Below are positions 14,789 to 15,391 of a DNA stretch of 64,000 nucleotides, piece after piece. A model generated the notes under the pieces. The model saw nothing but the letters and a program-made list of their open reading frames with translations, ran no database searches and was not told the DNA's origin. Made by a program: the position numbers and the translations under genes. Position 1 is the first letter of the stretch, and each line of letters starts with the position of its first letter. Source of the stretch: Paraphysomonas bandaiensis (taxonomy: Eukaryota > Protista > Chrysophyceae); NCBI GenBank assembly GCA_965644295.1, contig CBFFRP010000127.1, forward strand, positions 62,001-126,000, in the 5' to 3' direction.

Positions 14789-15391
14789 CTACTTATTCTT
14801 AGAGACCAGTTCGGTGAGCTTATTAATATCTGCCCCCCTAATCTCATCAATCTGATTGCCATCCTTGATGAACTGAAATGTAGGCATTGCATTTACTCCC
14901 CTCTCACTCGTGAGCTCATCGAGCTCATCGACGTCAACCATGAGGAACATCACATCAGTGTTCTTTCCAGCAAGTTCCTTTACAAGAGGTTTCATGTACT
15001 GACATGGTCCACACCAAGTTGCGGTAAAGTCAACAACGATAAGCTTTCCAGGATTAGATGAAATGATACCATCAAACTCTTCCTTGCTCGACACCTCTGT
15101 GACCTCTCCTCCCCCTCGCAGGCGCAATACAAGGTGCAGGGTTGACTCCTTTTGAATATTATAATCCGATAGGGTTCTCCCATCCTCAAGTTGCTTTCCC
15201 GCGAAGATTAATCGCTGTTGATCCGGAGGGATTCCTGTAGGTAATCGATATATTAGCATAGCCACACACAAACATAGACGCAACGCACCTTCCTTGTCCT
15301 GGATCTTCTGTTTCACATTATCTATGGTGTCTGATGGCTCCACATCAAGAGTGATGGTCTTGCCAGTGAGAGTTTTAACAAATATTTGCAT
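14789..15391 (-). CDS. Ubiquitin-thioredoxin fusion protein
   Basis: Removing the in-frame 54-nt intron 15235-15288 gives a canonical 76-aa ubiquitin ending LRLRGG, followed directly by a complete thioredoxin ([20 protein letters not shown]). Confidence 0.95.

Follow-up and report, generated by a model that had tools for sequence, protein, structure and literature searches.

A transcribed in-frame fusion of ubiquitin and a WCGPC thioredoxin in Paraphysomonas bandaiensis and its relatives in public sequence data

The window, a 64,000-nt stretch of genomic DNA from the chrysophyte Paraphysomonas bandaiensis, a marine unicellular stramenopile, carries a two-exon gene on its minus strand (14789–15391) that encodes a 76-residue canonical ubiquitin (Ub) followed in frame by a 106-residue thioredoxin (Trx) with a WCGPC active site. 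Both in the list of open reading frames and on direct reading of the DNA, this Ub-Trx gene appears as a 200-amino-acid frame at 14789–15391 that reads through the intron, which stays open because the intron's 54 nt are a multiple of three, in frame and free of stop codons. Coding exon 1 (15289–15391) starts with the ATG at 15391 and contains ubiquitin residues 1–34 plus the first base of the Gly35 codon, as indicated alike by the DNA, its translation, Pfam and a transcript. The GT–AG intron (15235–15288; 54 nt) interrupts the Gly35 codon in phase 1 and has no counterpart in that transcript, contig L021. Exon 2 (15234–14789) holds the ubiquitin–thioredoxin junction: its ubiquitin part (15110–15234; translation and Pfam) supplies the last two bases of Gly35 and residues 36–76, ending in LRLRGG, and its thioredoxin part (14792–15109) encodes 106 amino acids reading GEVTEV...WCGPC...MPTF...KNK, placed in the Trx1/h class by PF00085, PDB matches and the predicted fold. 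The frame closes with a TAG stop codon (14789–14791; sequence and translation). The untranslated regions, likewise on the minus strand, were delimited with L021, to which the 5′ UTR (15392–15439) is 100% identical and which defines the 3′ UTR as far as the contig reaches (14701–14788). About 40 nt upstream of the 5′ end of L021 lies a TATA-like run of TA repeats (15481–15493, minus strand), read from the sequence, which may be a core promoter element.

Pfam recognized ubiquitin (PF00240, E = 9e-29) and Thioredoxin (PF00085, E = 2.4e-24, 85.8 bits against a cut-off of 23.5) far over the cut-offs, both with the whole frame and exon by exon; exons were searched singly, and wherever a spliced sequence was called for, the database protein P0001, made up of exon 1, Gly and exon 2, served in its place. 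Exon translations and Pfam thus agree with the preliminary description of this DNA, which had reported a canonical ubiquitin with LRLRGG joined to a WCGPC thioredoxin starting GEVTEV. On one side of the gene, two adjacent plus-strand frames (16011–17550), divergent from Ub-Trx and about 570 bp away, match the halves of Duc1 (PF08588) and are probably one intron-containing gene. On the other side, a convergent frame (12438–12962, plus strand) encodes a RING finger and shows no sign of a functional link to Ub-Trx, except that both touch the ubiquitin system.

Transcript evidence shows this to be a real, spliced gene that is transcribed in one piece. P0001 (182 amino acids; Paraphysomonas transcriptome MMETSP1103), found by word search, is 100% identical to the locus across all of exon 2. 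The 688-nt contig L021, which encodes it, matches the locus with zero mismatches over the whole coding sequence and the flanking 5′ (about 48 nt) and 3′ (88 nt) UTRs, and lacks exactly the 54-nt intron; a single mRNA therefore spans the junction between ubiquitin and thioredoxin. The earlier view that an intron within the ubiquitin part marks a real nuclear gene is borne out by this cDNA, from which precisely that intron is absent.

The ubiquitin half was compared with other units of the same genome exon by exon, over 75 residues and 225 bases, Gly35 being restored by splicing. All 75 residues were identical to those of the polyubiquitin units (contigs C333, C565 and C71) and of two Ub-S27a genes (C275 and C172), whereas 43–53 of the 225 bases (around 20%) differed, every one of them synonymously. 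The ubiquitin part has therefore been kept as a real ubiquitin and is not a drifting ubiquitin-like domain. This pattern points to a canonical ubiquitin under strong purifying selection, and to an old, separate gene copy that is held by the same protein-level constraint as the genes supplying the cell's ubiquitin. The C-terminal LRLRGG is intact, with Gly next to it, so that a canonical ubiquitin with a GG end stands here in place of the diverged fold without a cleavable GG that marks the UBL and UBX types; nor is the gene a polyubiquitin, which has at least two head-to-tail units where this one has a single unit. The two Ub-L40 genes of the genome (C353, locus L025; C123, locus L026) have two introns in the ubiquitin part, one following Thr9 and one splitting the Ile36 codon. 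The latter is 3 nt, or one codon, from the Ub-Trx intron, near it but not at the same position (Ile36 versus Gly35), and the Ub-S27a and polyubiquitin units have no introns in their ubiquitin parts. Compared in this way, intron positions do not point to the gene that donated the fused ubiquitin.

By sequence and predicted fold, the thioredoxin half is a complete thioredoxin of the classical cytosolic Trx1/h type and a predicted disulfide reductase. It is 48–53% identical to diatom Trx h and to mollusc and fish Trx1, and WCGPC, the buried Asp before the active site and the cis-Pro motif MPTF are all present, with the catalytic residues invariant across 32 aligned fused proteins. PDB matches cover thioredoxin residues 3–106, residue 3 aligning with residue 2 of the solved Trx1/h chains; the absence of a linker, as first claimed, therefore holds to within two residues (Gly-Glu). 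An AlphaFold model built from the 32-protein alignment has two confident domains (mean pLDDT 90.1), the thioredoxin domain showing the expected strand–helix order at a pLDDT of around 90. The sole weak stretch, where pLDDT dips to 65, comprises residues 71–80, that is, the ubiquitin tail and the junction, so the bond to be cut is predicted to lie in a flexible stretch.

With the thioredoxin part as query and exon-by-exon matching over the 669 contigs of the 62.6-Mb assembly, no other thioredoxin more than 35% identical was found. The nearest other loci, on C434 and C608, encode thioredoxin domains behind hydrophobic N-terminal stretches. By this exon-wise search, the fused gene appears to be the sole untargeted Trx1/h-type gene in the assembly. 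Two further thioredoxin loci have features of their own. At C177:26313-26585 (minus strand; locus L031), a thioredoxin 45–50% identical to Trx h has an unusual WCMPC site and a signal-peptide-like first exon ahead of its domain. At C199:257598-263540 (loci L027, L032 and L036), a frame of just under 1,000 codons ends a long low-complexity protein with thioredoxin domains, one of which has WCGPC. The same genome contains many USP-type and three UCH-type deubiquitinase loci, as well as small-type thioredoxin reductase loci recognized through exon-wise matches that fall below the whole-protein cut-off.

Word searches and cluster look-ups yielded 330 proteins, of which 116 have the Ub(1–3)-Trx architecture, with one (66), two (45) or three (5) ubiquitin units; more than 100 sequence clusters carry it. 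The junction reads LRLRGG|V in 102 of the 116, and WCGPC lies 29 residues past it in 93. This near-fixed junction and spacing indicate that ubiquitin occupies the position of Met1 in a Trx1-type protein. Directly after Gly76, 102 of the proteins have Val, 7 have Gly and the others M, I, L, N or E; Pro occurs in 0 of 116, so that the bond would be open to deubiquitinases. Val is also the residue that starts mature animal Trx1; compared with typical LRLRGG|V relatives, the Paraphysomonas gene has two extra residues, Gly-Glu, and the N-terminal Gly is particular to it. Named members include a Ub2-Trx from Mallomonas (MMETSP1167), a Pelagomonas calceolata protein labelled 'Thioredoxin' in UniRef (A0A7S4E792) and a 178-amino-acid Ub-Trx from Chrysochromulina parva. 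Uninterrupted Ub-Trx and Ub-Ub-Trx frames were also seen on two long metagenome contigs (52 kb and 37 kb), showing that other organisms have the fusion in their genomes as well. Judged from these sequences, the architecture is neither rare nor private to Paraphysomonas, being common among chrysophytes, pelagophytes and haptophytes as well as in ocean sequence data.

Two observations bear on how individual entries should be read. The 90% cluster of the C. parva Ub-Trx also contains KOO25303.1 (P0335) from C. tobinii, an 81-amino-acid NCBI 'thioredoxin h' that is probably a truncated gene model without its ubiquitin exon. P0146 and P0374, which share one 90% cluster, have nearly the same thioredoxin part and different ubiquitin variants (E16/S22/E24/A28 versus D16/T22/D24/Q28); ubiquitin units may be exchanged between organisms during short-read assembly, so that unit counts from environmental data should be read with care.

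In the preliminary description, Ub-Trx was not known as a described class. As far as text is concerned this stands: in the literature searched, whose coverage falls short of all journals, no passage describing a natural Ub-Trx fusion was found, and the sole match to name searches was an engineered intein construct. The main survey of ubiquitin fusion partners in algae names actin, capping protein, NiSOD, P1, zinc fingers, an HMG box and membrane proteins, thioredoxin being absent (PMC6332867), and two reviews give the same set. As far as data are concerned the claim is too broad, since more than 100 clusters, including the UniRef Pelagomonas entry, carry the architecture, and one line of a supplementary Pfam-architecture table gives 'ubiquitin~ubiquitin~Thioredoxin' with a count of 1 and no comment, in a paper whose main text does not mention thioredoxin (PMC8122580). 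Source annotations call the proteins 'ubiquitin C', 'thioredoxin' or 'ribosomal protein L40e', and a protein atlas yielded just a cluster of haptophyte thioredoxin fragments and some Trx/UBX look-alikes. The wide annotation that the preliminary description would have taken as a refutation is thus seen in part: the fusion is widely present, but is named after one half only. To our knowledge, Ub-Trx is common in public data, mislabelled, and undescribed in text. Annotation by one half, together with an apparent truncation in at least one annotated genome, makes thioredoxin and ubiquitin gene counts in these lineages unreliable.

Phylogenetic analysis relied on a careful tree of 78 filtered thioredoxin rows and 105 columns. 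A quick tree of 204 thioredoxin domains, in which the Paraphysomonas sequence stood beside free diatom and oomycete thioredoxins, was discarded as a case of long branches meeting. In the careful tree, the Paraphysomonas thioredoxin grouped with Mallomonas and three environmental fused proteins (97/89), and all 46 fused representatives fell on one side of a well-supported split from the free thioredoxins of fish and diatoms. A single clade of all fused thioredoxins was not rejected by the AU test (p = 0.171), a result that on 105 columns does not by itself demonstrate one origin. A broader scenario may be entertained, although we would sooner bet against it: several major marine protist lineages (chrysophytes and synurophytes, pelagophytes and haptophytes) would have no source of their main cytosolic thioredoxin other than the tail of a ubiquitin or polyubiquitin precursor, following one ancient event in which ubiquitin replaced Met1. 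Thioredoxin supply would then be tied to ubiquitin synthesis, including stress-induced polyubiquitin expression, and the fusion would be a shared derived character of haptophytes and ochrophytes or a tracer of gene flow between them. An argument of this form, from shared character or gene flow, has been made before for Ub-NiSOD.

For the locus itself, we consider it probable that this is a ubiquitin-precursor gene that carries the cell's classical cytosolic thioredoxin as its C-terminal tail, with a product that is cleaved. USP- or UCH-type deubiquitinases would cut after Gly76 during or just after translation, an expectation drawn from the behaviour of the natural and engineered linear fusions of canonical ubiquitin that have been studied. 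By this analogy, the precursor is likely split into free ubiquitin and thioredoxin, which would be produced in equimolar amounts, the active thioredoxin starting at Gly (at Val in most relatives). The flexible junction of the model and the USP and UCH loci of the genome give such cleavage indirect support. The fusion would tie thioredoxin output to ubiquitin output, and we hypothesize that the supplies of the two proteins are functionally coupled, which would link proteostasis to redox supply as the preliminary description proposed. Ubiquitin may also aid the folding or expression of thioredoxin in cis, as its proposed role as a cis chaperone for ribosomal fusions would suggest (PMC8122580). 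Among relatives with two or three ubiquitin units, thioredoxin would replace the short cap that ends a polyubiquitin. The benefit to the cell may be a fixed dosage link or help from ubiquitin with folding or expression in cis, or there may be none, if the fusion is neutral.

Three other readings were weighed against that of a cleaved precursor. A chimera of a ubiquitin fragment and a thioredoxin gene next to it, created in assembly or gene modelling, is a real hazard where extreme ubiquitin conservation lets short-read assemblies misjoin, and one metatranscriptome member does pair a pelagophyte-like thioredoxin with a different ubiquitin type. At this locus, however, the independent cDNA contig is exact to the genome bar the intron and covers the junction, where the preliminary description had placed the risk of misassembly. 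The artefact is thereby excluded here; with the junction inside a single exon and Ub-Trx also present on long genomic contigs from other organisms, a chimera has a negligible chance of being the explanation. It is also improbable, though less extremely so, that ubiquitin is retained, either as a domain docking to the proteasome or p97, on the model of the PITH domain of TXNL1 and the UBX of Trx-UBX proteins, or as a mark for ubiquitin-fusion-degradation turnover. Proteins combining thioredoxin with a ubiquitin fold do exist, Trx/UBX clusters being among the protein-atlas look-alikes, and an uncleavable N-terminal ubiquitin is a known degradation signal (PMC3507821). Permanent ubiquitin-like domains normally diverge and lose the GG, whereas the ubiquitin here is canonical to its last residue, differs from the other ubiquitin genes only synonymously, and ends in a GG that is followed by Gly or Val and never by Pro, at a junction that is flexible in the predicted model. 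The synonymous-only divergence and the GG-Gly/Val junction make an uncleaved role unlikely.

Harder to set aside, yet in our judgement still on the doubtful side, is that the product is cleaved and the arrangement non-adaptive. A neutral fusion would have put a ubiquitin unit in place of the thioredoxin start codon, persisted because cleavage renders it harmless, and later become hard to reverse, as it was the only cytosolic copy. Thioredoxin catalysis needs no defined N-terminus, which fits such an account, as do the many diverse ubiquitin fusion partners of protists, whose significance reviews call unknown, keeping neutrality open for the non-ribosomal ones. An upstream stress element was also not found: the heat-shock element GAAnnTTCnnGAA has zero occurrences in the whole window and none upstream of Ub-Trx, which leaves the idea of a stress promoter without support and that of co-regulation without support of its own. 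Against neutrality stand the retention of the fusion in at least four named genera, two major lineages and more than 100 clusters with a nearly fixed junction, and the apparent status of the fused gene as the only untargeted classical thioredoxin in the genome; long retention does fit neutrality, yet is equally expected from selection.

Under the cleaved-precursor reading, Ub-Trx would be a ubiquitin-precursor gene of the same kind as Ub-L40, Ub-S27a, Ub-actin and Ub-NiSOD with a new partner, and thioredoxin would join NiSOD as a second redox enzyme among the partners of ubiquitin. Ubiquitin-fusion genes are among the few eukaryotic cases in which the production ratio of two proteins is fixed in a single reading frame, and what such fusions mean beyond the two ribosomal partners is an open question. 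Because it joins ubiquitin to a second redox partner, is apparently the sole untargeted classical thioredoxin of its genome and is common (116 of the 330 proteins), it lends itself to simple experiments on whether the ubiquitin part helps production, links dosage or is neutral baggage.

Among the closest known parallels are the ribosomal fusions Ub-eL40 and Ub-eS31/S27a, in which a single canonical N-terminal ubiquitin is likewise joined without a linker to a small abundant partner on one mRNA. Both classical types, which are processed by deubiquitinases, are present in the Paraphysomonas genome. Ub-Trx differs from them in that its partner is a redox enzyme and its distribution lineage-restricted, whereas the ribosomal fusions are universal; the intron in its Gly35 codon also sets it apart from Ub-L40, with introns elsewhere, and from Ub-S27a, with none in ubiquitin. 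Another is the fusion of ubiquitin to nickel superoxide dismutase (NiSOD) in marine algae. The metal site of NiSOD needs an exactly processed N-terminus, giving ubiquitin an obvious role there; for thioredoxin there is no comparable requirement. Paraphysomonas itself is heterotrophic and colourless. Like Ub-Trx, Ubiq-NiSOD is a protist fusion of ubiquitin to an antioxidant or redox enzyme, patchy over several algal lineages, and it occurs almost only in phototrophs in the survey that describes it, where thioredoxin is unmentioned (PMC6332867).

Relatives in which two or three ubiquitin units end in thioredoxin resemble a capped polyubiquitin, the thioredoxin occupying the place of the short blocking tail, which in the Paraphysomonas genome is FCLNV, I or V. 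The Paraphysomonas gene departs from this pattern, having one ubiquitin unit and, as its 'cap', a complete 106-residue enzyme. Viewed from the thioredoxin side, the fused domain resembles the classical cytosolic proteins (animal Trx1, plant and diatom Trx h) in its end-to-end alignment, WCGPC site, buried Asp, MPTF motif and predicted fold, but it lacks a separate start codon, with ubiquitin and Gly-Glu in the position of Met1. Trx-UBX proteins and TXNL1 similarly link thioredoxin to a ubiquitin-fold or proteasome-binding domain. That domain is a permanent one, diverged and placed at the C-terminus, whereas the ubiquitin of Ub-Trx is N-terminal and canonical, with its GG cleavage site intact.
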